Below are positions 9,846 to 32,966 of a stretch of 64,000 bases of DNA, one piece after another. A program made the translations under genes and the position numbers. How positions within the stretch are numbered: position 1 is the stretch's first letter; each line of letters begins with the position of its first letter. The notes beneath the pieces were generated by a model, which had not been told where the DNA came from, ran no database searches, and was given only the letters and a program-made list of their open reading frames with translations. This stretch comes from Ylistrum balloti (taxonomy: Eukaryota): assembly GCF_031769215.1 (NCBI RefSeq), contig NW_026782172.1, positions 124,001 through 188,000 of the forward strand, written 5' to 3'.

Positions 9846-9931
9846 ATGGCTCTAGTTATGGAGGATAAGGAATCGATTGAAAAACTTTCTCTGGCTGCTG
9901 AGCATGGAAGTTCAGAACCAGAGATGAAAAG
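9846..9931 (+). CDS. HVCN1: Hv coding exon 1 (MALVMEDKESIEKLSLAAEHGSSEPEMK)
   Basis: ATG at 9846, donor gtgagt at 9932, phase 2 matches exon 2. A further upstream exon cannot be excluded. Confidence 0.7.
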
Positions 9932-12900
9932 GTGAGTTTCATTTTCTGTTTAATCATTCTGTTCTCTAAGATATTATTCTTAAACTGCTATGGTATTGTA
10001 TTTTGATATCATTAAACGATTTTATCACTTTATCACTTATTTTCACTATGGACGGGGTGCCTTTTAAATTAGTGTTAGTGTTCGCATGTGTATGTTTGTT
10101 GTTTGAATAAGATCAAGCCTTAGTTTGGATTGGGAATGATTTTAATTACCCATTCGCTCCCCTAAAACAGCCAAGGTCATATGAAGACGGTAGTATAGAT
10201 AATATTGACAGATCTGTCGCCTCTTTTAATTATTTACTCCATCTATTAGTGTAATCTGAATGAAAAAAAAAACAAAACGAAATCAACATGAACATATTCA
10301 TACCATGTTTATCGAGAGGCGTGCTATCCCTGCATCCCAACCTATGGTTTTATATGTTCTATTTGAGGAATAACCAATTACTGTATTTGAAAAGAATGAT
10401 CGAACCTTTTTCCTATACGTGTTGTATACATTGTTTTCATTTAAGAACATGGCGGTACTTTCTTGGATTGATCAAGGTTGGTGGGTGAGATAATGCGGAT
10501 AAATGTAATTTTTCCATATTAGTTACAAATTGAAACATATGTTCTTATTACACAGCCAAGGGATTAATTGTGACGTTCCAATACCCACAAGGTCACCTTC
10601 ATTAGACAAATGAGCAGCATGAAGTGAAATGTTTTAGCACTGCCGTATGAAACTTACGAAATTGAATTGAAACGACAGACTTTCGCGGTTGCACTGTACA
10701 CCTATGTACACTAGTGACTATATATAAAACTATAAAGAACGAACCGTACACTAGATGGTAACAATTTAGTGTAGTCGCTTCGGACACGCTTTGTTTAACA
10801 CTGAATGACAGTATGTGTCCTCTCGTTCCTGTTTAGTATGACTCGCTGTGGCGTATCCAGATGGATTCTTTGAACACAATTGTTTTCCTTATCGACTAAT
10901 CGGGAATTTTCGCATTAAATGCTATTATGCTGCTGTTTTGAATGATATGAAAGTGTTGATTTATTGAGCGTGGGCTGAGATAGCCTTAGAGCTGATTTGT
11001 TGAATCCGATCTTGTATACATGATTCTTGGATGTTCTTAAAATGAACTAAACTATCCTTGAGAGTCTTGTGAGGAGTGGAGGTTATTACCGTGGTCATGG
11101 TCCGACGTACCCTTGATATAAAATATGACTTCTTTTATTTTTCCCTAGTGCTTGGTTTCTTGGTCTTTTCTTAATTTTCTTAAATTCTTTGTTCACTTTC
11201 TGGATATCTCAACCGGGATGTCTACATGTTTTCGATGCGTTGTTTGTGAGTTTATTCCCGCTTCTTATTTTGTTCTTCTGTGATAATATTGTCACATCTG
11301 TTGATCACATATCGTGCAACACCTAACCTCTGGTGTAAGGAGTGGTGCGAGTCTTCGTCCGTGTGTGTTTGTCCTATATATCAAAGCGTGCTACCTTTGA
11401 TTTCTTCCTCACATGCGAATTCGTTTCTGTTGATGATATCTCTTCTATTGCTAAGTACAGTTGTATCATTTTGAGGCCATTTCATGACTAGTTGAACTGT
11501 TTGCACATCTATGAGCAAGTGCTACCCAATCGACTACACAACATTTCGACCAACTTTGTACGTTTTTTCTCTATACATTTCCACCATCGTCCAACTATTT
11601 TCTACCGAAACTGTCGGTCGATTCCGTGCCATTTCGCACACTACGTACATTAGTGTTTATACAATTCACATTGGTCATTTGTACTATGTAGTCATCAGAA
11701 GAACGTCACACTCTAATCTTCTACTGGTTGTGTTATAAGATGAAGGTGACCGTGTAGTCATCGAAACGTCACACTCTAATCTTCTACTGGTTGTGTTATA
11801 AGATGAAGGTGACCATGTAGTTATCGAAACGTCACACTCTGATCTTCTACTGCTTGTGTTATAAGATGAAAGTGACCGTGTTGTTATCGAAACGTCACAC
11901 TCTAATCTTCTACTGGTTGTGTTATAAGATGAAGGGTGACCGTGTAGTTATCGAAACGTCACACTCTAATCTTCTACTGATTGTGTTATAAGATGACGTT
12001 GACCGTAAAGTCATCAAAACGTCTCACTCTAATCTTCTACTGGTTGTGTTATAAGATGAAGGTGACCATGTAGTTATCGAAACGTCACACTCTGATCTTC
12101 TACTGCTTGTGTTATAAGATGAAAGTGACCGTGTTGTTATCGAAACGTCACACTCTAATCTTCTACTGGTTGTGTTATAAGATGAAGGGTGACCGTGTAG
12201 TTATCGAAACGTCACACTCTAATCTTCTACTGATTGTGTTATAAGATGACGTTGACCGTAAAGTCATCAAAACGTCTCACTCTAATCTTCTACTGGTTGT
12301 GTTATAAGATGAAGGTGACAGTGTAGTCATCGAAACGTCACACTCTAATCTTCTACTGGTTGTGTTATAAGATGAAGGTGACAGTGTAGTCATGGAAACG
12401 TCACACTCTAATCTTCTACTGGTTGTGTTATAAGTTTAAGGTGACCATGTAGTCAATAAAACGTCGCACTCAGATCTTCTACTGGTTGTGTTATAAGATG
12501 AAGGTGACCAGGTAGTCACCAAAACGTCACATTTTAATCTTCTACTGGTTGAGTTATAAGATGAAGGTGACCATGCAGTCATCGGAACGTCATCTTAGTA
12601 TTCAATTGATTATGTTATAACAACATCTTATATATTGAAATTATCATCCTGAAGAAAATGTTTTAAAATATCCTAACAAAGTGCTAGATAAACAAGGGTA
12701 GATAACGAAAGTAACATGTAGAATAACCCAAAGCAGAATTCCCTTTTTTTACCTTTGTTGAATTTAACACCCTATCATTATCTTTATCTGCAGTTACCCT
12801 AAATTTATTGCAAAACCTGCAGAGCAAACATATTACTCTTCAATTATGTCCGCGTGGCCTATTCTTGTTCTACAGAAATCAGATTGCATCAATAAAATCA

Positions 12901-15900
12901 GACTTGGTCTAACAATGACTCTTCATGACGAAAATAACTTCTTCTGACAGAGATGAATTCATTTTGGTGACCTGAACATTATCGATCAACAGAGAAACAA
13001 AACTATCGCCGGCGTGTAATCTGTTTATTTGTATGGTCTATTGGCAAGTTTGTTTTAATGGATGAGGCACAAAAACAGCTTGTACAACAAACACAAAAGT
13101 GAATAGCGTCTTTTAATACAATTTAAAGTAAGATAAGATTCAAACACCGAATTAAACTGCATTATACAGCTGCATCGTCCTTCTAGGACTCGTCAATGAT
13201 GCCAAGGGCCTAAATGTTAAACCTACGTGGCGACTGAAGAAAATCCATTCAGTTTCTATGATGAATCATATAAGAATAATTCTATCGTACTCCGTGTTAT
13301 TATTTGTATAGATAACTAGTTTACATCTTATATTCATTTCATAATATTTGTGTTTCCCTAAATACATATAAAATACATATATATGAAATCAAATTACATT
13401 TGGAAGAAAAAACGTTTGCGTAGTATAAAATGGCCGTTATATGGAATATTGATATGAACGGTGTATTATCGGAAATTGTTTCCGATTTCAGTTGTTTGAG
13501 AAATTATGGACCAATCATCGCATGACGTCAAATTTGTATTGATCACGTAATTTGCCTGTTATTTTCTTATTCAACCCGTACATCAGAAGAGAAAGAACAT
13601 ATGTACGGTCACTTCCCGAATTGGATGTAATATATGCGATGTCCTCTGCTTTTTGTACATTGGGAAGAAACCCAGTAATAAGACCTGATGTAAATACATG
13701 CGATATGATATATGTGGTGTTTTTCTCTGCTGGAATTTCACTCGTGTTCATTGGCTGACATTAAACTCCAATCAGAAGGTTCTCTTTTTTAACTTGATGC
13801 CTGATAAATCCTGTGTCGATTGCAAACTTTATCTCAAATAACGATGAATGTTACAGACAATGTAACATGATGTATATGAGTCAAAAGTCAAACCTCCATT
13901 GTGTGTATTCAAATCAATGGCGAGGCTATCGACATAATATTGATCATAAATAGTTTTATGGATATCTATACCTTGGAACCAAGTGTTGAACATGTGTTGA
14001 AAACTTGATAAATATTCTTCATGCTCTTTTCGGATTGGTTGTCCTTAATTCAGTTCTATCATAACATGAAATCAAATTCACGGATATCTGTGAGAAGAAA
14101 TCAGCTTTAAGCCATTGCTAACTTGACGTTTATTGATGCAAGATCAGTAACTATTTTCTGTGTCGGATATTTCAGTAGTGATCCAGCTCTCCACATTTTA
14201 TTGCTTGAGGGAATGGACTATACATAGAAGTTAACACTATCACATGGAAGTTAATCCATGTAATTTCTTTTCTTTTCAATTAAAGGATATTTCCTATGTT
14301 GCTGAATAAAAACAGCGTGTTATTACAAGCAAAGGGTGGCCACCCTTTTAATGATTTGGGAATCTAGATTTCGCAAGAAGTGTCATTAATTTCAGGATAC
14401 CCATGATAATTATATTATATGAAAGAATTTTTATGAAACTGTTTAATAACATATATAATAATATATCAACATATCATTAATATAATCTTAATTCTTTAAC
14501 CAAACTTTATCAAAATTAATTTTTTTTCAATTTAGAGATGTAATTCACTAATTAGAATTATGGAAATCTTTCTTATGAGAAATTCAATCTTCGTCGACTA
14601 TACCGCCAATAAGACCGCATTCTCCAATCTAAACTTTTGTTTTCATATACCGTATACCCCTATTATATTGAAACATCTCAATATGCATCATCTCTCATTC
14701 ATGATCAGCCTTAATAGGCAAAAAATAAAATACGAATGGAATTGGAATATATNNNNNNNNNNNNNNNNNNNNNNNNNNNNNNNNNNNNNNNNNNNNNNNN
14801 NNNNNNNNNNNNNNNNNNNNNNNNNNNNNNNNNNNNNNNNNNNNNNNNNNNNNNNNNNNNNNNNNNNNNNNNNNNNNNNNNNNNNNNNNNNNNNNNNNNN
14901 TTTGTTTTATTTCGTGTTTTTTTTTAACCATTTCGGCGTTTGTGTGATTGCAGGCACCATGCGATGAGGAAATGTTATGCATGAATGGATCAGACAAAGT
15001 AATCGACAAGTTGTGTGTGTCATCAAAAACCGACCAGATGGAATAATCTATTTGTAAATGGCAAAAGTGATGCATAACATTACATAAAAGTTAGGCCTTA
15101 ATGAATAAAATTAATACTGATAACGTTAAATCAGCAGTATTGGGGAACAGGCGTACGGATGGAAATGAAAGAAATGTCTCCTCAAGACAAAGTTTCAGTT
15201 CTGAATACTGCTGCTGAAAATATTAATGTCATTGAGATTCGTTTATCAAAACATAGATTAAAGATTTCATATCTGCCTTAGTAGTTATCCGACCGGAATA
15301 GAACGATTTTTTTTACAGCTGCTTCTATTAGTTTGTGGATATGTAGCCGGGTGTTCTCCCGCCACAAAAATTGCACTTGTTTCCGGAATATTTGTCAATG
15401 TGATGGAACTTTAAATGTGTTCTCCCTAATTCTGTCATCAGTAGACAGTATCTCAATGGCTTTGGCTGTTCATGTCTCCTCAGAAACCTATCCCGATATA
15501 ACCCTTTGAGAAGAAAAGTTTAACTGAAAGCTAATTTGTTGAAACAATACAACAATATCACATTTATTTTCCACCCAGTACTGAGAAAACGTAAAATTAA
15601 ACATGGCTGAAGAAGCAGGAAGTCGCTTAGTCTAATTCTCAATCAACTTTCTTGGAAATATTCCATGTCGAATATTCATAATTTCGAGAAAATAATAAGT
15701 TGACCATTACCAAATAGAAGCTGTTCTGCCTCTTACAACTAGGACATTTAACATCTCAATCCAGTACTGAGCGTTTCCTGGAGTCACCTCGATAAATTAA
15801 GAAATCAGGGGAAGTACAGGGGCATGGCTAAAACACACTGAATTCTATCATTGACAGTATCCATGCTGTCATTTCACTGTTAATAAGGTCCTTTAATGAA

Positions 15901-18900
15901 AAGTGTCTGGCTAGCAAATAACGCTTTTGGTCCTGAACACTTGCTACACCAGGTTACGTGTAGTGAGTTTTACTACATTAAGAAATAATATGTCATTTTT
16001 TCATGTGTAATCTTAAACCACTGGCAGGTCGTGTAATTAAAACTTTCATGTTGCCATTTTGATACGAGAAAGTTTTCATTTCAATTTCACACAGGCTTGT
16101 TAATATCGCTGACACAGTCACGTCTTTTCAGAATTTAAAGAAAACATACATCTTCATTGTTGACCTTGACCTTTTACTGGCCAAGCAAACCAACACCAGT
16201 TCGGGGCAAACACACGTAACAGATACACAACTAAAATACACACATAATTAATTTTTTTTAAACTTTCAGTTTTTCAAAGCACCTTATGTTCTCATATCAG
16301 AGATAAAAAGCATCCTCTCTCGGCATCGCACATGTCATGCTTCAGTATATATTTTATACATTCATACTCACTTCGGCGCGATAAACAACATTTTTGTCAT
16401 TCATGTAACGAATATTTTGATTGGTCTACGACTATACTGATCGACTACGCAGTTTTTTCTTTATTTATAAGTTTGTCGTCTCAGTGTGCCATTGAGGAGA
16501 AGATGGATTCATTCATGCCACGGATCAGTGTCCATGAATCACGTGACCGTCGCTGTTGTCGTATCGATATGACGAGATTGTAGATGCCATGACCCACGAC
16601 ATTAGTCATTAATGACACATTTGATACGATTAGTATGAAGCTCTTAAAAACAGACGTCTTTGCGGGAGTCATACAAAGCAAAACCACATTAGCCATAGCA
16701 ATAGATGCATATCAATGAGTTATTGCTATTTACAAAAAACATGTGAAAAATACAATAAGTCAATTATTACTAAAAGGTTAAGAGAATCATAATCCAAAAC
16801 TAGGTCAAAGAACCAAAAAAAGAAGGATTTACATGGTGACTCCTGAAAATGTACAAGGCGAATAGGACCAGGTGTTCCTGAAGAATACAGTGTAAACGTC
16901 TTCTGCTTCATCCACATCATCCGCCATGTAAACCTTGATCAATGTAAGTTGGTAGTCAGACGAGTGAGGGCAAAGTATACAACAACGAAGCTAACATGCA
17001 AACTCAGGATAATCAACGCGTCCAGCTTTATCACATAAATCTCAATGAGATAACGAACATCAATCTTTCGACATTATATTCATCAACATACATCTATCGA
17101 AACGAAATATGATTTTGTCAGTTGACATCTTGAAAAAAATCAGGAAATCAGGAAAAGACCCTTAGGTAATGAATCAGTTTGTAAACACCAAAGTTCAGGA
17201 ATATTGCTATCAAGAAAAAGGAAAATTTCAATGATTAGGCTTATTATACAGTTTGGTGGAAAGATCTGCCTATTGGTTCATTATAGGAAAAGGCCTCGGT
17301 AAAGGGCTGATTTAGGAGAATCTGTCGTGTTTTTTAATTCTGGTGGACATTACCGATGGACGTGATCGTTATTTTAAGAGAAGATGTTATCAATATGTCT
17401 GACATTGAAAGGTCTTTGTGACCTGTTCTGATAAACTCTTCGATAAGAGGTAATGGGATGATAAATACTGTATAAAATGGTTACTGTGCTAAGATTTTAC
17501 AAATCCACACAATAGAACCTTCCAATACAAAGTAAGTAATAAACAGCATCTTACAACTGTTTCGTTCTAGTAGTGATATTGAATAATAAGTTGTTGAAAC
17601 CTCTGTGTCGACTGAGAAAAAGTCAAATCAACACCAGATGGAGACCGACAATATCCCCAAAGTATATCTGTATATTTCCGATTTTAATTACTGCTTATAC
17701 ATGTGGTTCAAACGAACTGATCCATACATGCACTCGTGGATTCTGTTGTTTTACTAATTTTAGCAGAAAATCAAAGAAATATAGATTTCAGCATTTTTAT
17801 ATTTCCAACACGCATTTTCCCTTTCGATATTAGTATTGGTCCCTTCATAGTTGCTACACTTAAAGTTATTTTGTTAATTTTCTCTTAGAAATTTATCCTG
17901 AAAAACCATCCATAATATACTTCTGTATTTCAACAAAAATCAATGGTTTATTTTTAGTAAAATTTCATTTCTTACATAACGGTGTTTCAGTGGCAGGAAT
18001 TCTAATTAATTAATCAGTGCACTTGTGACTATGAAGCCAGCCGACATGCGTCGATTTTACGTTTTAGGGTTCGAACCTTACACAGAAAAAAGAGTAGTTT
18101 AAAATGTTTTTTCTTTTACGTTAATTACCAATAATTTGCTCTCACGTACTTGCTTTATCATAAAATCATTTTTACATGTACATACAAATACAGAACAAAA
18201 ACACGAGTGAATAGTATATTTCAAAACAGATATAGGATTATAAACATTAGAACCAAAGGACTGCATAGTACATTCGGATCGTCTTTGTAGAACTCGTGTA
18301 TATTTGTGTTCTGAACTAGGAGAGTATCAATTCAGGCTAACTTACCCACATCTTTAATAGCATATATGTGTTCCTTTTTGTTTCAGTACTCGAGAGAAGT
18401 TGGCTGAATTAATGAAGAGCAACCTTATACAATACGGTATCATCTCCTTGGTTGTACTTGACAGCGTCATCATCCTACTCGAATTTCTCATCGACCTTGA
18501 AATGATACATAGTAAGTGTTGTAATTCTAAAACCGATAATTAAGATTTGTTTAATGTGTAGTTAATCCGCAGTGTTAGAGGGAAATCGTCATGCTATAAT
18601 ACTCATATTTTGTATTTTACTAATAATGCAATGTATTTATTTAACACACTATTACTGTAATGCATTTACGTTACAATAATTGTTTTGATATTTAATTTAC
18701 AGAATCATATATAACAACTAACAAATGTCAATCGACAGTACACGTAAAACACATCAATCATTTACCCTGGTGAGTACAGGTGACTTGTGTAAGACATGTC
18801 TAAAATGCAGACGCAAAAAGTGTCTTAATTTGTCTAGGGCTTTTATCTTCCTGGTTACAGTTTGTAAGCTTTAATGCCTTTTCCTTTGCTAACTTTCTGA

Positions 18901-21900: not shown

Positions 21901-24900
21901 AGGTTTGGGTCACCTGCCCGACCACGTGGGTTTTCCCCGGGTACTCTGGTTTCCTACCACACCAAGGCCCTTCGCGCCCTTCCATCTGAGCAAACAAGGG
22001 TGATTAATATCAGTTGGAGTAATTTGCTTCGCAATTGTTGTAAAATAAATAAAGTTTATAATTACTAGTAATGTCATATTGACAGGTGACACAGTGACTT
22101 TAAATAAATAGCTACTAGACAACCTTACTTTGTAGTAGAACAATACATGTACCTGATGTGATGTCAAGTTTTATCAGATTCCATACAGATCTACACATCG
22201 TCTGTGAAAGGAACGGGATTCGGATCCATTTTCATGATAACGTTGTTTCCTGTGTGATGTCTGGTAAAGTCAGAACTGAACTGTTTTCATTACGGATAAC
22301 TCATCATTGCTACATTTTACTGTCTGGACGGTCGGTATTGGTGAATTCAAACAGAAGGTTAGATCTGCCACCGTATAGGCGCTGTCACTTGGTTGGTTAC
22401 ATGTACTTTTGATACATGTTTAATTGAAATAACGAAATGTTACAGGACCTTTAACATCTTCTTGTTGTGACGTAAGTCATACAAATTCCATAAATAACCG
22501 TGTCGATATTTTCTGCTGATGTATATCGAACGTTCGTATTGATTTGATTCAGTGGTAAAATCATTGGATAAGTTCATGTCGCCATCATTTACAGAATATA
22601 AAACAAATAAGACCGAGATTCTTAATCTTAATCTAGACTCAATTTAAATAAAATTATTAAACAAAAGAATGATTAGCACAAAGAATCCTGGAAACCTCCA
22701 CGGAGAATAAGACCATGTAATACAGAAGAGTAAGCGTCTTCTGCTTCATCGAGGAGACCCGTCATGTAAATCTTGATCGATCCTTGTTGATACTGTGATG
22801 GCCTCAAATGTAAACAAGGTTTACCAATCAGAAACAACACGTCCAGCTTTATATCGCGATCGCACAAACAAATTAAACATTTCTAAATCAGATCACTATG
22901 AAGATAGTAAACAAATCCCCATAATTTTTTATCAGCATATATTGTTTTAACTTGTGTTAGGAGATTGTCCGTCAGTTGACAACTTCTTGCACGATAATTG
23001 TGGTAAAGGGAACAGAGTGTTGAACATCGGGTCCACTGAGACATGTAAACACCATAGATTGGGGATGCAGAGATTGCTTAATGCTGGTAGTATACACTTT
23101 ACATTCGGTTGGTGACAGTGGTAAAGACCTCGATGAAAAGTATACCAAACCTAACAACAACGATAAACGAAATTGCGATAAGGAAAATGAACGTCGTGTT
23201 TAAAATGATTTTCTCGGCGAAAGATTAGTGATTGTACACCAAGCGAAGGCTCTCAAATTGTAATTTTATAAATTATTTCTCATGTGTGATCTACATTTCA
23301 TTAACATTTGGGTATCATTACGGTTTTGTTAAGACGTCGGGCCTTTTGTTGATGTTGTAAATGTAATACTGTGTTATTATTCAGTTCCAGAGAATGATGT
23401 CAATGGATTGCATTCTCCGATGTTCAACAGTAGTATTAATCACACAGCAGAGCAGTATACAGAACTGCTATCAACGTCTCATCCTTTGAAAGCCCATGAT
23501 TCTGATGCTCACATTGAGCACAGCTCCCACGCAGTCCATCATGATAACCATATAGGAGAGGATCATAATATGACTGATGTCAATCACAATCACACGTTGT
23601 TAGGTCATGCTCACCACCATACCAACAAGGAATTTGCTGAACACGTACTTCATTATGCCAGTCTTACAATACTATCAATATTTGTCGTAGAGGTACGTTT
23701 TGGGGTTCTTTTGGGGTACATTTTTTACTTAAGCAATTTAAAACATGTATATTACTTTCTACGAAACACTGAGATGTAAGAAGTTTTCAGTCAAGCGGAA
23801 ACCGTAAATTGATAAAACGTTTTATTCTAACGAATATAACTACGGAACAAGACATTGATGGTTCGGTGCGGTATGGCGTGATGGTGTGGTGTGGTATGGT
23901 GTGATTGTTTGGCGTGACGCGTTATGGGTTGATGATGTGGTGTGGCGCGGTTTGATGTGGGTGTGTGGTGTTAGCGGTATGGCATGATGGTGTGGCGTGG
24001 CGCGGTATGGTGTAATGGTGTGGGTGTGGTATGGTTCGGTATGGCGTGATGGTGTGGTGTGGCGTGGTGCGGTATGGTGTGTTTGTGTTGTATTAGCGGT
24101 ATGGCGTGATGGTGTGGCGCGGTATGGTGTTTGTGCGTGGTGCCGCGCGGTATGGCGTGATTGTTTCGCGTGGCGCGTTATGGTGTGATGGTGTGGTGAG
24201 GTATGGTGTGGATGTATGGTTCGGTGCGGTATGGCGTGATGGTGTTGTGTCGCACGGTATGGTGTGATGTTGTGTAGTGTGGTGCGGTATGGCGTGCTTG
24301 GGTTGTGTTAGCGATATGGCGTGATTGTGTGGCGTGGCGCGGTATTGTGTGATGGTGTGGTGTGGTGCGGTGCGGTATGGTGTGGGTGTGGTATGGTGCG
24401 GTATGGCGTGATGGTGTGGCATGGCGCGATATGGTTGTGATGGTGTGGTGTGTTGCGGTATGGTGTGGGTGTGTGTTGTGATGCGGTATGGCGTGATGGT
24501 GTGGTGTGGTGTGGTGCGGTGCGGTATGGCGTGATGGTGTTGTGTCGCACGGTATGGTGTGATGTTGTGTAGTGTGGTGCAGTATGGTGTGTTTGGGTTG
24601 TGTTAGCGATATGGCGTGATTGTGTGGCGTGGCGCTGTATGGTGTGATGGTGTGGTGTGGTGCGGTGCGGTATGGTGTGGGTGTGGTATGGTGCGGTATG
24701 GCGTGATGGTGTGGCATGGCGCGGTATGGTGTGATGGTGTGGTGTGTTGCGGTATGGTGTGGGTGTGTGTTGTGGTGCGGTATGGCGTGATCGTGTGGTG
24801 TGGTGTGGTGCGGTGCGGTATGGTGTGATGGTGTGGTTTCGTGCGGTATGGTGTGGGTGTGGTATTGTGCGGTATGACGTGATGGTGTGGCGTGGCGCGG

Positions 24901-27527
24901 TATGGTGTGATGGTGTGGTGTGGTGCGGTATGGTGCGGGTGTGTGGTGCGGTGCGGTATGGCGTGATGGTGTGGTGCGGTGTGGTATGGTGTGGGTGTGT
25001 GGTATGGTGCGGTATGGCGTGGTGGTGTGGTGTGGAGCGGTATGGTGTATTTTAGTTGTGTTAGTGGTATGGCGTGGTGGTGTGGTTTGGCGCGGTATGT
25101 AGTGGGTGTGTGGTGTGGCGCGATATGGTGTGGGTGTGTGGTGTGGCGCGGTATGGTATATTGGTGTGGTGTGGCGCGGTATGGTGTGGGTGTGTGGTGT
25201 GACGCGGTATGGTGTGGGTGTGTGGTGTGGTGTGGGTGTGTGGTGCGATGCGGTGCGATGTGGGTGTGTGGTATGGTGCGGTATGGCGTGGTGGTGTGGT
25301 GTGGACCGGTATGGTGTATTTAAGTTGTGTTAGCGGTATGGCGTGGTGGTGTGGTTTGGCGCGGTATGGTGTGATGGTGTGGTGCGGTGCGGTATGGAGT
25401 GGGTGTGTGGTGTGGCGCGATATGGTGTGGGTGTGTGGTGTGGCGCGGTATGGTATATTGGTGTGGTGTGGCGCGGTATGGTGTGGGTGTGTGGTGTGAC
25501 GCGGTATGGTGTGGGTGTGTCGTGTGGCGCGGTATGGTATGATGGTGTGGTGTGGCGCGGTATGGTATGATGGTGTGGTGTGACGCGGTATGGTGTGGGT
25601 GTGTGGTGTGGCGCGGTGTGGTGTGGCGAGGTATGGTGTGATTGTGTTTAGAATAAGGAAACGTAGGACTGTATGTTTTATTATATCGTCTTTTTTTAGA
25701 AAGACATCACACTTACAAATGAAATATTAGATACCTTATTGTTTTTAATGGTCAACTAATTACAGATCGTTCTTTTTGTTTTCATTATAATAGAAATAAT
25801 TGTCGTAAGGTGATTTCAAACAATTAACCTTCAGTTTCTTTTAAGAAAAATACGTTAATCGATACTGCGATAAAAACATGTATACTTTGTTTTATCAAAG
25901 ACATCATGTTTCAAACATGTGGTATTGCAAATATCGTATATGAAGGAAAACTTATTTTCGTTAATCAATTAGCGGAGCAATTACGATGTAAAATTTGTTT
26001 TTATGTTTCCAAACTATTGACGTTATAGCGTTTTTTTTTATTTCAAATTTACAGGTTGCAGCCAAAATATATGCCGAAGGTACCCACTTACTAAAGCATA
26101 AAGCAGAGGTAAGACGAGTTCTGATGCTTGCTCACTTTCAGTAAAAGAACACGCAGAGATAGCTCATCATGTACAACATCAAACTTATCATCCTCCGAAG
26201 ATTCAAGCCATATGGTTCGATTCCACCATGGGATGGTCTGTGTTTCTAGGGAGACTATATTGTTCTTCACTGTTTTAGTTACCCTGTGGCACGACACTTT
26301 ACCACTGTTTTAGTTACCCTGTGGCAAGACACTTAACCACTGTTTTAGTTACCCTGTGGCACTACACTTTACCACTGTTTTATTTACCCTGGGGCACGAC
26401 ACTTTACCACTGTTTTAGTTATCCTGTGGCACGACACTTTACCACTGTTTTAGTTACCCTGTGGCACGACACTTTACCACTGTTTTAGTTACCCTGTGGC
26501 ACGACATTTGACCACTGTTTTAGTTACCCTGTGGCACGACACTTTACCACTGTTTTAGTTACCCTGTGGCACGACACTTTACCACTGTTTTAGTTACCCT
26601 GTGGCACGACACTTTACCACATTTTTTTTTCTGTTGGGCTGTCAATAGTTCCACAGTGAGATAGTCACTGACTAGTACAGGAAGGTTCCGCCTAAAATTG
26701 ATCTTGACTGTTCAAAGTGGCGATTGCCAGACACGGCTGCTTGACATTGCTCTCATTTACATCGATCTTCGAAATTCGCTAATACCCTAAGATTAAATCG
26801 GTCTATATTTTATGTTGTAGGTATTTGACGCCATTGTTGTGTTGGTCTCCTTTACATTGGATATAATTTTCTCTTTCGTCAACGTAACTGATGCAGCTAG
26901 GGACGCCGCTGGTCTCATGGTTATCCTCCGTCTATGGCGAATCACAAGGATCATCAACGGTAAAATATACTGTTTATCATTATCGAATCAATGCAGTCAT
27001 ATAAAGGCCATATTGTGTTTGTATATAGATCACACCACAAGTATAGACTACTTATGTTTTTCCGGTATTTGTCACTGATTTTTATAGAACGCCGTCGGAT
27101 AAAAATTTAGGTAATAGAGCGTTTCCATGGTAACAAATATTGCATTTAGGGAATGAAAGCAGCTGCCTGAATGTGAAGTTTTTAGAATGATGATTTTTAC
27201 ATCTTAATTCAAGCCCGAATATCTAGATACTGTTCACGAAAAGAAAATATCTCTCGAGAGAAATGAGTAATACAGATATTTCATGCTGGTAAAGGCAAAT
27301 TGGTAAAATAGACAAAATAGTAACCAATATTGCTACATAATTTTCAGGGGTGATCATATCTGTTAAAATGGTTACCAATATCGCTACATAATTTTCAGGT
27401 GTGATCATATCTGTTAAAATGGACGCAGATAAGAAAATCGAAGAACAGAAAGCAGCGCGCAGCAGAGCAGAGGAAGAAGTAGAGAAGTTGAAAAACCAAG
27501 TGACATCGTTAGAGGTGAAATAACTTT

Positions 27528-27589
<62 letters not shown>

Positions 27590-30500
27590 TACATAAACAC
27601 TTCTTAAATCATTATGAAATGTAAATGGAGCAGGCTTAGTTTGTTTTATAGTCAGGATTAGGGTTAGGGTTCACGACACTCTCGATATAGCCAATAAGAT
27701 CAAAGCTGTTAGGGTAAGGGTTCACGATGCTCTCGGTATAGCCAATAAGATCAAAGCTGTTAGGGTAAGGGTTCACGACGCTCTCGATATAGCCAATAAG
27801 ATCAAAGCTGTTAGCGTTCACGACGCTCTCCGCATAGACAATAAGATCAAAGCTGTTAGGGTTCACGACACTCTCGATATAGCCAATAAGATCAAAGCTG
27901 TTAGGGTAACGGTTCACGATGCTCTCGGTATAGCCAATAAGATCAAAGCTGTTAGGGTTAGGGTTCACGATGCTCTCGGTATAGCCAATAAGATCAAAGC
28001 TATCAGGGTTAGGGTTCACGACACTCTCGGTATAGCCAATAAGATCAAAGCTGTTAGGGTTCACGTTACTCTCGATATAGCCAATAAGATAAAATCTGCT
28101 AGGGTTAGAGTTCATGATGCGCTCGATATAGCCAATAAGATCAAAGCTGTTAGGGTTCACGACACTCTCAGTATAGCCAATAAGATCAAAGCTGTTAGGG
28201 TTCACTACGCTCTCGATAAAGCCAATAAGATCAAAGCTGTTAGGGTAAGGGTTCACGACACTCTCGGTATAGCCAATAAGATCAAAGCTGTTAGGGTTAG
28301 GGTTCACGACACTCTCGGTATAGCCATTAAGATCAAAGCTGTTAGGGTTCACGACGCTCTCGTTATAGCTAATAAGATCAAAGCTGTTAGGGTTCACGAC
28401 GCTCTCGGTATAGCCAATAAGATCAAGGCTGCTAGGGTTAGGGTTCACGACACTCTCGGTAGATCCAATAAGACCAAAGCTATCAGGGTTAGGGTTCCCG
28501 ACGCTATCCGTATAGCCAATAAGATCAAAGCTGTTAGGGTTCACGACGCTCTCGATATAGCCAATAAGATCAAAGCTGTTAGGGTTCACGACGCTCTCCG
28601 CATAGACAATAAGATCAAAGCTGTTAGGGTTCACGACGCTTATGATATAGCCAATAAGATCAAAGCTGCTAGGTTTAGGGTTCACGACACTCTCGGTATA
28701 GCCAATAAGATCAAAGATGTTAGGGTTAGGGTTCACGACACTCTCGGTATAGCCAATAAGATCAAAGCTGTTAGGGTAAGGGTTCACGACACTCTCGATA
28801 TAGCCAATAAGATCAAAGCTGTTAGGGTAAGGGTTCACGACACTCTCGGTATAGCCAATAAGATCAAAGCTATCAGGGTTAGGGTTCACGACACTCTCGA
28901 TATAGCCAATAAGATCAAAGATGTTAGGGTTAGGGTTCACGACACTCTCGGTATAGCCAATAAGATCAAAGCTGTTAGGGTTCACGACGCTCTCGATATA
29001 GTCAATAAGATCAAAGCTGTTAGGGTTCACGACGCTCTCGATATAGCCAATAAGATCAAAGCTGTTAGGGTTCACGACACTCTCGGTATAGCCAATAAGA
29101 TCAAAGCTGTCAGGGTAAGGGTTCACGATGCTCTCGGTATAGCCAATAAGATCAAAGCTGTCAGGGTTAGGGTTCACGATGCTCTCGGTATAGCCAATAA
29201 GATCAAAGCTGTTAGTGTTCACGACGCTCTCCGCATAGACAATAAGATCAAAGCTGTTAGGCTTCACGACACTCTCGATATAGCCAATAAGATCAAAGCT
29301 GCTAGGGTTAGGGTTCACGATGCACTTGGTATAGCCAATAAGATCAAAGCTATCAGGGTTAGGGTTCACGACACTCTCGGTATAGCCAATAAGATCAAAG
29401 CTGTTAGGGTAAGGGTTCACGACACTCTCGGTATAGCCAATAAGATCAAAGCTGTTAGGGTTCACGACGCTCTCGATATAGCCAATAAGATCAAAGCTGT
29501 TAGGGTTCACGACGCTCTCCGTATAGCCAATAAGATCAAAGCTGTTAGGGTTCACGACGCTCTCGATATAGCCAATAAGATCAAAGCTGTTACGTTTCAC
29601 GACGCTCTCGGTAAAGCCAATAAGATCAAAGCTGTTAGGGTTAGGGTTCACGACACTCTCGGTATAGCCAATAAGATCAAAGCTGTTAGGGTAAGGGTTC
29701 ACGACACTCTCGATATAGCCAATAAGATCAAAGCTGTCAGGGTTAGGGTTCACGTTGCTCTCGGTATAGCCAATCAGATCAAAGCTGTTAGGGTTAGGGT
29801 TCACGACACCCTCGGTATAGCCAATAAGATCAAAGCTGTTAGGGTTCACGACGCTCTCGATATAGCCAATAAGATCAAAGCTGTTAGTGTTCACGACGCT
29901 CTCCGCATAGACAATAAGATCAAAGCTGTTAGGGTTCACGACACTCTCGATATAACCAATAAGATCAAAGCTGTTAGGGTAAGGGTTCACGACACTCTCG
30001 GTATAGCCAATAAGATCAAAGCTGTTAGGGTTAGGGTTCACGATGCTCTTGGTATAGCCAATAAGATCAAAGCTGTTAGGGTTAGGGTTCACGACACTCT
30101 CGGTATAGCCAATAAGATCAAAGCTGTTAGGGTTCACGACACTCTCGATATAGCCAATAAGATCAAAGCTGTTAGGGTTCACGACGCTCTCCGTATAGCC
30201 AATAAGATCAAAGCTGTTAGGGTTCACGACGCTCTCGATATAGCCAATAAGATCAAAGCTGCTAGGGTTAGGGTTCACGATGCACTTGGTATAGCCAATA
30301 AGATCAGAGATGTCAGGGTTAGGGTTCACGATGCTCTCGGTATAGCCAATAAGATCAAAACTGTTAGCACTACCAGCATCTCTTTTTTAATAACACGTGA
30401 TCCTTATCGAAAGTAATTGTCAGTAGATTGTCTACATGTGAATATCGATGTTTCTGTGAGTTGATACGACAAAAATGACATTTGTTAAGTTTAATTTAAA

Positions 30501-32966
30501 CATATTTTATTGCAATATGATTAGGTACAAGCGTTTATAAAGCCCTTTCAGAATATATTACTACACACACATTATCTCTACAAGATGGCAGTATGGTACA
30601 ATAACAAACAATTATAAACAAGTTGAGAGGGGGAAGGGGGAGGAAGGAGAGAGTAGGAGAGAGAGTAGGAGATAGAGAGAGAGAAGGAGAGAGTGAAAGA
30701 AGAGAGTGAGAGAAGAGAGAGAGAGAGAAAGGGGGGGTGCGAGAGAGGAGGGAGGGGAGGTGTTTAACATTGTATATATGTAGATCATGCATCTGCTCCT
30801 TTTCCACGTAAGCGACACAGATGATACACTGTCCACATGCCCCAAACGCACATCTTGTCAATATTCATCACTTCACGTGCTTTGTATACTTCCACCTTGC
30901 CACTCATTGCTCTCTCGAATATCCGTTTCCATTTGTTCGCTTACACAGAGAATCAACGGGTACATGGTGCATATATACAAATGTTTTCCCATTATAATAA
31001 TTATATTAACTTTAGACGTTAACATCACATTTCTCTCATAAAAAATATCTTCAGATGAGTGAGGAAGAGCGGGACAGAGAAATTCAAAGACGTGCTTGTT
31101 AGAATCTGTTTGTTTCTTGGATATATTGCTGAATATGCAAAATATAGCTTGAGTTTCTTGTTAAAATGTATCATTAGCCATGCAAAAATAGTGTTCATCT
31201 AGTCACATAGATAAAGGTAGGGTTGTAAGACAAATAAATAAGAGTATGAATATTAGGTATATTTCGGTGTCAGCTATAATATGTATTCTATGCCATCTTT
31301 TTGATGAAATGCTCTTAAAATATATCGTTATGTAAACTTAAACAATTTAAATTTTCTGTAAAATAAATATATATATGATACAGGTAAATGGTAAATACAA
31401 ATAATTAGTAGATAATTAAGAATGAACCTTGTCCATGAAAACAGTAATAGGTAAAAGATAAAAGTTGTATAACTGAACAATGATAACAGTATTGTCTCCC
31501 TTTGTACTAGTTATTGTAACCATGGTATATGGTTAAGTTAAAAATAAAACATTGTTGATTGTGGCAAAGCTTGTAAGCTAAGATATATATATCTATATCC
31601 CATCTGGTGTTATATCGATTTTTGGTGTATATACCAACATAGACTCATTAACATGTATGCTTTAATATCGTATCTCACACATAAATTCCTTAAAACATGT
31701 CTAACTTTGTATGGCAACAATATCCAATTTCACCCTATCAATTTTGTATTCAGTTGTAGCTACATAGGTGTACAATAAAATTTTCTTTTTAAATCAACAG
31801 AAAATCTATTAAAAACAAGCCACAAAGCGAGGCGTTATCCCCCGCACCCAACTGTTGATGTGAAACGCACATATAATATATGTACAGGTATAACAATTTG
31901 TGACGTCACTCACTGATGTACTGCTACCATTACCTGAAGATCTAATACAGTAAAAGCACTATTGCAAAATGTAACGTCTTCTTTTGTTAATTATCAATTA
32001 AATGTCCTTACGTCTCCTCAATTTCAACATATATCTTACATATAAACCTTATAGTAAGAGTTTATATCTTGAGGTAGATCCTGTGGGTTTAACTGTTGAT
32101 ATTTGAATATAACTTTGTATTGTCCATGAACAAATTTATGCAAAATTCTCTAAGCTCTGGGGTAATAGAAGAAGTCAAAAGAAATCGAAAAAATCGTTGG
32201 TAACAGAACAAAGATAAATGATAAAATGTCCTAAATAAAAAGGCAAAACTAGGGCACAAACTTAATATATACAGAAAGTTTAGTTGAGTTAGGTGGATTG
32301 GCTTCAAAGTTGTAGCCCGGCAAGGAAAGTTAACGGTAATTTTGTGTTTTTGACTATGGTAACAACAAAAATATCAAAAAAATATAAACAGCACAAGGCA
32401 CAACTAGAGCACTAACCTATCATATACAGAAAGCTTTGTTGAGTTGAGCGTAGTTGTAACCTGGACAACAAAGTAAACACTTATTTTGTTTTATTTTTTT
32501 GTTTGAATTTTTCTTTTTCTTTTTTTGGTTTTTGGCCTTGTTCCATGGTAACACAAATCTTTACAAAATGACGTCAATAACAAAAGGAAAAACTACAGCA
32601 CTAACCTAATATGTGCAGCAAGTTTTGTGAAGTTGAGTTAAAAGGTTTTGAAGTTATAGTCCGGAAAAGCCCTCGGACGGACGGGCGGACGGACCGTGCC
32701 CAAATTAATATCCCCCTCGAACGCGTTTCGCGGGGTATTATAAAAGACATGATGACCTTCAGGCTGTAGTCTGTTATAAAATAAATAACGTGGACGATTG
32801 AAATTATGTATTGATACAGAGATATTACTGTTTCTGAGACCTAGCAGAAATATCCAGTTGTTATTTTATGTGTTCACAGGCAGAACTTGAAAGACTACAG
32901 GAGCATCTAAGATTGCTGGAGGAGGGCAAATCAGGTCCGAAATTAGACGAAAATATCAACGAGTGA
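9846..32966 (+). CDS. HVCN1: Voltage-gated proton channel (Hv1/HVCN1 family), 304 aa; join(9846..9931,18387..18511,23385..23692,26055..26108,26821..26959,27399..27514,32880..32966)
   Basis: Phases 2,1,0,0,1,0 all match and the total of 915 nt ends in TGA. S1 LVVLD (selectivity Asp), S2 HYASLTILSIFVVE, S3 FDAIVVLVSFTLD, S4 RLWRITRIING (RxWRxxR signature). C-terminal heptads VEKLKNQ-VTSLEAE-LERLQEH-LRLLEEG align colinearly with the human coiled coil. Paralogue identity within molluscan Hv genes not determined. Confidence 0.93.
10567..10610 (-). ncRNA. Degenerate minimal type-I hammerhead ribozyme motif of the Penelope-like element
   Basis: Minus strand reads TTGT CTAATGA A GGTGACC ttgtg GGTAT T GGAAC GTC ACAA. 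Stem I is TTGT/ACAA. The core is one substitution from CTGATGA and GGAAC is one substitution from GAAAC. Likely inactive. Confidence 0.55.
10567..11480 (-). mobile_element. Degraded Penelope-like element (RT thumb plus GIY-YIG C-terminus) with a hammerhead relic at its 3' end
   Basis: Relic peptides INRCDNIITEEQNKKRE, PHKTLKDSLVHFKN and KESIWIR...LNRNER, interrupted by stops and deletions. Hammerhead-like motif at 10567-10610. Confidence 0.6.
11686..12591 (+). repeat. 63-bp minisatellite, about 14 units, hammerhead-derived, with a 4-unit higher-order repeat
   Basis: Unit gtgaccgtgtagtcatcgaaacgtcacactctaatcttctactggttgtgttataagatgaag. A block of four variant units recurs at 253 bp spacing (11809 and 12062). 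Confidence 0.95.
14753..14900. other. Assembly gap (148 N)
   Basis: Run of N. Confidence 1.
16860..17460 (-). mobile_element. Degraded Penelope-like RT 3' fragment with terminal motif
   Basis: Minus relics RHIDNIFS and IFLFLDSNIP, then gtaaacgtcttctgcttcatc...ccgccatgtaaac at about 16891-16935. Confidence 0.45.
18387..18511 (+). CDS. HVCN1: Hv exon 2 (S0-S1: TREKLAELMKSNLIQYGIISLVVLDSVIILLEFLIDLEMIH)
   Basis: Acceptor tttgtttcag, donor gtaagt at 18512, LVVLD motif. Confidence 0.95.
19370..20150 (-). mobile_element. Highly degraded Penelope-like fragment with terminal motif
   Basis: Terminal motif taagcgtcttctgcttcatcg...gccatgtaaacc at 19389-19431. The internal similarity is weak. Confidence 0.3.
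20850..21640 (+). mobile_element. Degraded Penelope-like RT fragment, plus strand
   Basis: Relic FGGKIFQQTIDIPILTHCVP resembles FQQTIGIPMGTNCAP, and IYALESEIKGT resembles IYPxELEIKDT. Ends in catggcgggtgccgtcgatggagcagaagacgcttacc near 21571. Confidence 0.65.
21821..22065 (+). mobile_element. tRNA-derived SINE with a V/Meta-like central domain
   Basis: A box TGGCGCAGTGG (21832), B box GGTTCGATTCC (21874), core gggttttccccgggtactctggtttcctaccac, A/T-rich tail. A related copy lies at the window end. Confidence 0.85.
22700..22860 (-). mobile_element. Terminal fragment of the same Penelope-like family
   Basis: agaagagtaagcgtcttctgcttcatcgaggagacccgtcatgtaaa is the reverse complement of the 21571 motif. 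Confidence 0.5.
23385..23692 (+). CDS. HVCN1: Hv exon 3 (His-rich S1-S2 loop plus S2)
   Basis: Acceptor tattcag at 23384 (alternative in-frame ccag at 23390), donor gtacgt at 23693. Ends EFAEHVLHYASLTILSIFVVE. Confidence 0.92.
23859..25648 (+). repeat. Degenerate pentamer satellite (GGTGT/GGTAT/GGCGT/GGTGC)n, 1.8 kb, in Hv intron 3
   Basis: Strong G/T strand bias. An internal duplication of about 295 bp (gtcgcacggtatgg block near 24249 and 24544). Confidence 0.95.
26055..26108 (+). CDS. HVCN1: Hv exon 4 (VAAKIYAEGTHLLKHKAE)
   Basis: Acceptor tttacag, donor gtaaga, 54 nt, phase 0/0; S2-S3 linker. Confidence 0.9.
26268..26620. repeat. 35-bp minisatellite, about 10 copies (ccactgttttagttaccctgtggcacgacacttta)
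   Basis: Direct reading; near-identical units. Confidence 0.95.
26821..26959 (+). CDS. HVCN1: Hv exon 5 (S3-S4: VFDAIVVLVSFTLDIIFSFVNVTDAARDAAGLMVILRLWRITRIIN)
   Basis: Acceptor tgttgtag, donor gtaaaa at 26960, RxWRxxR signature. Confidence 0.96.
27399..27514 (+). CDS. HVCN1: Hv exon 6 (GVIISVKMDADKKIEEQKAARSRAEEEVEKLKNQVTSLE)
   Basis: Acceptor ttttcag at 27398, donor gtgaaa at 27515. A duplicate acceptor lies 51 bp upstream. Confidence 0.9.
27528..27589. repeat. (ATC)n microsatellite, about 20 copies
   Basis: Direct reading, 13 bp after the exon-6 donor. Confidence 0.95.
27652..30367. repeat. 45/51-bp minisatellite, roughly 55-57 units, containing TTAGGG/TAAGGG hexamers
   Basis: Unit gttagggttcacgacactctcgatatagccaataagatcaaagct, with or without one extra hexamer. 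It is the source of the 897-aa minus-strand ORF. Confidence 0.97.
30626..30760. repeat. Polypurine (GA-rich) tract
   Basis: About 135 bp almost entirely G/A on the + strand. Confidence 0.85.
31814..32740 (+). mobile_element. Helentron-associated non-autonomous element (HINE-like)
   Basis: Starts aacaag. Subterminal IR ttatcccccgc (31835) / gcggggtatta (32730), (GGAC)n near 32676, and 3' hairpin cccctcgaacgcgtttcgcgggg. Confidence 0.65.
32880..32966 (+). CDS. HVCN1: Hv terminal exon 7 (AELERLQEHLRLLEEGKSGPKLDENINE*)
   Basis: Acceptor tttatgtgttcacag, phase 0. Continues the heptad register and aligns with human QEIERLNKLLR. Confidence 0.85.
   Translation, partial: AELERLQEHLRLLEEGKSGPKLDENINE

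Follow-up and report, generated by a model that had tools for sequence, protein, structure and literature searches.

The closest described relative of the gene treated here is AcHV2, a voltage-gated proton channel of Aplysia californica (Chaves et al., FEBS J 2023; PMC10911540). AcHV2 is 339 amino acids long and has Asp in S1, RxWRxxR in S4 and the S2 His, together with a 79-residue S1-S2 loop that contains 14 His and showed no tertiary structure in molecular dynamics. In patch-clamp recordings it is proton-selective and opens at a very negative threshold with inward H+ currents, which its authors modelled through altered deactivation kinetics, and its expression is very strong in gut and gills (PMC10911540). 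The dependence of its gating on external pH (pHo) is identical to that of the short-loop AcHV1, at 44 mV per pH unit, and Zn2+ affects all three Aplysia channels, more weakly than mammalian Hv1 (PMC10911540). A long His-rich S1-S2 loop is the published hallmark of HV2 and not a trait of a single species; its purpose is the question that the AcHV2 paper left open.

Other Hv channels offer partial parallels. The S1-S2 loop of the coccolithophore channel EhHv1 is extended and contains ten His, of which two are required for Zn2+ block, and the organism provides an experimental link between the channel and pH homeostasis during calcification (Taylor et al., PLoS Biol 2011; PMC3119654). Zn2+ block of insect and Ciona channels comes mostly from the single S2 His, although their loops have other His. 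Up to eleven Hv channels have been counted in a scallop, and RxWRxxK in S4 is the published mark of the minimal HV4 channels, which are specific to bivalves.

Here, we describe an Hv gene of the scallop Ylistrum balloti that lies in a window of 64,000 nucleotides (the whole stretch of DNA that was analysed, from contig NW_026782172.1). We regard it as nearly certain that the gene is the scallop orthologue of HV2 and that its S1-S2 loop is coding. Apart from the question of the loop, this finding is routine annotation.

Results

Gene structure

The gene model was built by mapping the Argopecten irradians orthologue (P0126) onto the window and then reading the junctions (Table 1). It has seven exons and encodes 304 aa, a length that fits the RefSeq-predicted scallop proteins (304-308 aa); all introns are GT-AG, with consistent phases, and exon 1 is 89% identical to P0126 by tblastn. 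Because exon 2 ends in phase 1 and two bases from exon 3 complete the ATT codon of Ile71, reading is continuous, and the frame in which exon 3 was first read is the one that the splice sites demand. The exon 3 frame runs on from exon 2 and into exon 4 without a stop.

Table 1. Exons and loop features of the window HV2 gene (window coordinates).
Feature	Position	Strand	Content
Exon 1	9846..9931	+	ATG at 9846, 28 codons and 2 bases (MALVMEDKES...); GT donor at 9932
Exon 2	18387..18511	+	Cytoplasmic lead-in and S1 with D54 in VVLDSV; AG acceptor, GT donor; ends in phase 1
Exon 3	23385..23692	+	Entire S1-S2 loop (residues 71-159) and outer half of S2; AG 23383-84, GT 23693-94
Sequons N85-S-S and N89-H-T	23426..23446	+	Same positions in all four scallop orthologues
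Sequons N132-M-T and N139-H-T	23567..23596	+	Same positions in all four scallop orthologues
Juxtamembrane block HAHHHTNKEFAEHVLH	23606..23653	+	Ends in the S2 His, H160 (codon 23651-23653)
Exon 4	26055..26108	+	Inner half of S2 and S2-S3 linker (VAAKIYAEGTHLLKHKAE)
Exon 5	26821..26959	+	S3, short His-free S3-S4 linker, S4 with RLWRITRIIN
Exon 6	27399..27514	+	Post-S4 helix, start of coiled coil
Exon 7	32880..32966	+	End of coiled coil and stop codon

The product has the makeup of a proton channel, as the preliminary description had it. The acidic selectivity-filter residue of S1 (D54) occupies a column kept in at least 90% of a 25-protein alignment, the S2 His is present in the context LHY, and S4 carries the RxWRxxR signature as RLWRITR (26929-26949), with the R, W and R columns invariant in the alignment. 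Exon 5 matches solved Hv1 chains (human 5oqk_A, E = 6e-7; mouse, E = 1e-5). The model stops after the coiled coil, with no S5-S6 pore domain. Pfam searches of single exons gave no Ion_trans match because the pieces are too short; the orthologues carry precomputed PF00520.

Searches of sequencing runs that used exon 3, or exon 7 together with the sequence downstream of it, returned run X1 as the sole match. Its contigs span introns at an even depth of about 10, so X1 is DNA and uninformative on splicing. We infer splicing in this animal from its orthologues together with the reading frame and the splice signals. X1 departs from the window at 18435 in exon 2 (C>T, synonymous) and at 23601 inside the loop, where T>C turns Leu143 into Ser, the residue also found in Pecten.

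The introns hold several repeats. Intron 1 contains 148 N (assembly gap or mask) at 14753-14900, intron 3 a GT-rich minisatellite of 1.7 kb with periods of 28, 56 and 84 bases (23882-25626), and intron 4 a 35-bp array of 10 copies at 94% identity (26268-26620). In intron 6, a (CAT)n run (27530-27590) begins about 15 bases past the exon 6 donor; after it, 51-bp units form a 2.7-kb array (56 copies, 86% matches; 27658-30367) that creates a spurious open frame of 932 codons. A duplication of about 51 bp at 27323-27422 supplies an extra upstream copy of the exon 6 acceptor and first codons; since reading from this copy (near 27346) meets TAA after 14 codons, it would act as a decoy or truncating acceptor.

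The S1-S2 loop

Exon 3 encodes a 102-residue peptide with 19 His (18 in the loop and the S2 His) and four N-x-S/T sequons. From the end of S1 to H160 there are 89 residues (I71 to L159), and H160 follows D54 at a distance of 106 residues; the corresponding distance in human Hv1, from D112 to H140, is 28. The charge-bearing residues of the loop are 18 His, 13 Asp or Glu and 2 Lys or Arg. At the His frequency of the remaining protein (6/215), the probability of at least 18 His in 89 residues is about 5e-11, and chance is excluded as the origin of the His richness. A microsatellite origin of the His run was considered and rejected: Tandem Repeats Finder (TRF) finds nothing in 23300-23800, so the loop DNA is not a microsatellite or tandem repeat. 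By Hv topology the loop, lying between S1 and S2, is extracellular.

No His occurs in the S3-S4 linker (FVNVTDAARDAAG), and in alignments human H193 falls opposite a gap or residues other than His. The linker carries an NVT sequon (26881-26889) that is specific to scallops, the rest of the clade described below having SVT, HVS, TVT or SVS. Glycosylation at this NVT is unlikely, as it lies few residues from S3 and oligosaccharyltransferase needs a minimal distance. The preliminary description was accurate on all these features: the gap of about 90 residues before the S2 His, the 19 His and four sequons of exon 3 (the strings it quoted are present), the retained S2 His, and the missing S3-S4 His with an NVT in its linker. 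Its two statements of background, that coccolithophore channels have long His-rich S1-S2 loops and that molluscs have several Hv paralogues, agree with the EhHv1 loop with its ten His (PMC3119654) and, for the paralogues, with the literature and the further loci found in this genome.

Placement among molluscan Hv channels

A word search from the canonical paralogue of this genome found one long-loop relative, in the snail Gigantopelta, with 50% identity over 246 residues, loop included. With the Gigantopelta protein as query, matches were obtained in Pecten maximus (308 aa), Argopecten irradians (304 aa) and Mizuhopecten yessoensis (308 aa), and further in two species of Haliotis, Pomacea, Physella, the chiton Liolophura and Aplysia californica (339 aa). 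The bivalve matches of the word search are scallops only, which is not a census of oysters, mussels and clams.

The preliminary description had proposed a phylogeny against molluscan Hv paralogues. In a maximum-likelihood tree, the window protein falls in a clade of 11 molluscan long-loop proteins (support 100/99) made up of four scallops, gastropods and a chiton and including the 339-aa Aplysia protein; its nearest neighbour is that of Pecten maximus, at 91% identity. This HV2 clade stands apart from the HV1 clade, to which the genome's own short-loop gene (L002, contig C197) belongs. The clade of 11 is still recovered at SH-aLRT 99 when the loop is excised from the sequences. We equate AcHV2 with the Aplysia protein (P0128) by species, by its length of 339 aa and by the description of its loop, which by the boundaries used here has 77 residues with 15 His, and not by accession match. 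Membership in a clade with an Aplysia protein that fits the description of AcHV2 makes the window gene the scallop HV2 orthologue. The window protein also has the HV2 trait of an enlarged His-rich S1-S2 loop (89 residues, 18 His) in an otherwise small, conventional channel.

Two other Hv classes were rejected. The unconventional HV3 channels have xPWRxxR and large intracellular domains, and the window protein has RLWRITR and short termini; the minimal bivalve HV4 channels have RxWRxxK, and the window protein has Arg at the third position of the signature.

The genome contains at least nine Hv-type S3-S4 exons (HV1, HV2, an HV4-like locus and L004-L009), in line with the published scallop count. 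The HV4-like exon (L003; G000:C315:99480-99611, minus strand) encodes RLWRFFK and lies about 51 kb upstream of HV2, on the same contig but outside the window and on the opposite strand to HV2. This linkage might reflect an origin of HV4 through local duplication. The six exons L004-L009 (contigs C438, C44 and C339) carry the HV3 signature xPWRxxR, except that L008 has LPWG instead.

Conservation and predicted structure of the loop

All 11 loops of the clade are 70-101 aa long, with 16.7-20.4% His, more acidic than basic residues and 3-6 sequons, and their calculated pI lies between 5.9 and 6.5 in 11/11 with generic pKa values. For the window protein, the same generic values give a net charge of -10.7 at pH 8.1, +1.2 at pH 6.0 and +5.1 at pH 5.5. 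Among the four scallops, the loop core is 45-68% identical, against 90-95% for the remaining protein. Within these diverging scallop loops, the His positions of the window protein are kept in 33/42 comparisons against 90/174 for other loop residues (Fisher p = 0.0017), and all four sequons stand at identical alignment columns in 4/4 species.

At both its ends the loop is fixed throughout the clade. It starts with PE[ND] after S1 (PEA in Physella), and it enters S2 through NK[EH]xxEHxLH in all 11 members; HV1 proteins have Pro at position i-4 of the S2 His in 52 of the 59 scored. The EHxLH block is, on the sequences compared, specific to HV2. To what was known of HV2, the comparison adds that the length class, His fraction, acidity, pI near 6 and sequons of the loop are kept as its sequence diverges fast, a pattern that reads as a signature of selection on composition.

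AlphaFold2 was run on the Pecten maximus protein (P0124), a 91% identical stand-in for the window protein, with a 25-sequence alignment. The model has helices at 41-65, 155-191, 193-215 and 221-294, which form a confident four-helix domain and a long helix running from S4 into the coiled coil. At residues 66-154 the pLDDT stays below 50 and no secondary structure is modelled, which predicts a disordered loop, low pLDDT not being proof of disorder. The S2 helix begins at Pecten residue 155, the equivalent of N151 in the window protein, so that in the model the conserved block prolongs S2 outward.

Discussion

Taken as a whole, the observations are probably best explained by a scallop HV2 channel in which a four-helix voltage-sensing domain itself conducts H+ and is joined to a dimerising coiled coil, and in which exon 3 supplies the HV2-specific loop. 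A proton-selective conductance gated by voltage and the pH gradient has been shown by patch clamp for the Aplysia orthologue only, and the very negative threshold with inward H+ current is likewise published for AcHV2 only; by analogy, the scallop protein may share both. Under this explanation, the loop would form a tether outside the cell, intrinsically disordered, N-glycosylated and rich in His, Asp and Glu; with generic pKa values, its calculated net charge is about -11 at the pH of sea water, about +1 at pH 6 and positive below that. It could act over the external mouth as a titratable buffer that binds protons and metals (a proton antenna or a metal decoy) and so favour the inward H+ conduction that sets HV2 apart; fixing the pH dependence of gating would not be its task. 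The helical NKExxEHxLH block atop S2 may offer Glu, His and His as ligands for a modest Zn2+ sensitivity, in place of the missing S3-S4 His.

The antenna or buffer role taken by itself is a possibility that we put forward tentatively. The inward current can be explained without it, through the altered deactivation kinetics used by the authors of the AcHV2 study (PMC10911540), and the literature searched reports no deletion or dissection of the loop. A stronger form, in which a disordered, glycosylated polyampholyte with a pI near 6 has been selected throughout mollusc history as a charge-switching antenna that serves the inward H+ current, seems to us somewhat unlikely. If it were true, the antenna would concentrate protons at the channel mouth and might also trap Zn, Cu or Cd there, so that in gill and gut epithelia HV2 could draw H+ inward from sea water that is alkaline and poorly buffered; the part that the S3-S4 His plays as a Zn2+ site in vertebrates would pass to the HV2-specific E-H-x-x-H turn atop S2.

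The preliminary description had presented the loop as unusual and had read it as a sensing appendage for external metal or pH, with a possible link to calcification or metal handling. The unusualness falls away, as such a loop was already published as a defining trait of molluscan HV2 (PMC10911540). A regulatory sensor of this kind that sets channel gating we consider unlikely. It could appeal to the external His that mediate Zn2+ block in Hv1, to the two loop His that EhHv1 needs, to the response of all AcHV paralogues to Zn2+, and to the 18 His, 13 acidic residues and conserved pI near 6 of the loop itself; but AcHV2 has the same pHo dependence as AcHV1, its Zn2+ inhibition is below that of mammalian Hv1, and in insect and Ciona channels the S2 His dominates the block, so the loop is unlikely to be the main pH or Zn2+ sensor of gating. 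As for calcification, nothing links AcHV2 to it: expression is strongest in gut and gill, and the presence of the family in a chiton and many gastropods means that it is not tied to one shell type. What stands of the preliminary interpretation is the paralogue, the extracellular acidic His-rich loop and the conserved sequons.

The loop might also be a tolerated low-complexity spacer without specific function, its His kept by mutational or compositional inertia. The rapid divergence of its core among scallops relative to the rest of the protein, the Leu-to-Ser difference of X1, the absence of predicted structure and the published gating parameters, which are not obviously loop-dependent, would all fit such a spacer; we nevertheless judge it very unlikely, given a length class, His fraction, net acidity, pI and sequons that are kept across bivalves, gastropods and a chiton, His positions that are retained above other residues, four sequons fixed in four scallops, and DNA that is not a repeat. 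Exceedingly improbable is the remaining alternative, that an internal in-frame acceptor removes or shortens the loop in the mRNA, for example an AG before 23604 that would leave HAHHHTNKEFAEHVLHY and a short-loop channel. Exon 3 does contain nine in-frame AG dinucleotides, but these have weak polypyrimidine tracts and none is supported, the frame is open across the loop in 11 species with conserved ends and sequons, and the Aplysia cDNA that was cloned and expressed includes the loop. For the HV2 channel with a candidate buffer loop, which we prefer, two experimental targets are indicated, the disordered core and the E-H-x-x-H turn.

Comparison with known proton channels

AcHV2 and the window protein share the S1 Asp, RxWRxxR in S4, the S2 His, the lack of a His in S3-S4 and a C-terminal coiled coil, and both have paired or clustered His in loops that end in HHHTNKExAEHxLH. 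They differ in loop size (77-79 aa with 14-15 His in AcHV2, 89 aa with 18 His in the scallop), and the overall identity of AcHV2 to the scallop orthologues is about 45%; outside their ends, the loop cores cannot be aligned. AcHV2 has about 40 residues more at its N-terminus than the scallop protein, the S2 context is LHY in the scallop and LHA in Aplysia, and the S3-S4 NVT sequon is found in scallops only and not in AcHV2.

Hv1 channels (human HVCN1 and molluscan HV1, including the C197 copy) resemble the window protein in the four-helix voltage-sensing domain, the selectivity Asp, the S2 His, RLWRxxRIxNG in S4 and the coiled coil. Unlike the window protein, HV1 has a loop of about 12-17 residues and a Pro four positions before the S2 His, and the second Zn2+-binding His of vertebrate Hv1 (H193, in the S3-S4 linker) is absent from the window protein. 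HV3 channels of the AcHV3 type, of which this genome has several copies (L004-L009), also have a very long S1-S2 loop that contains His, but they differ in xPWRxxR (no R1, and Pro before Trp), large intracellular domains and leak-like gating, whereas the window protein is small and has the full RLWRITR signature. EhHv1 is like the window protein in its long, His-holding S1-S2 loop; it belongs to a distant lineage, shares 19% identity with human Hv1, has no counterpart of the animal S2 His and extended its loop independently.
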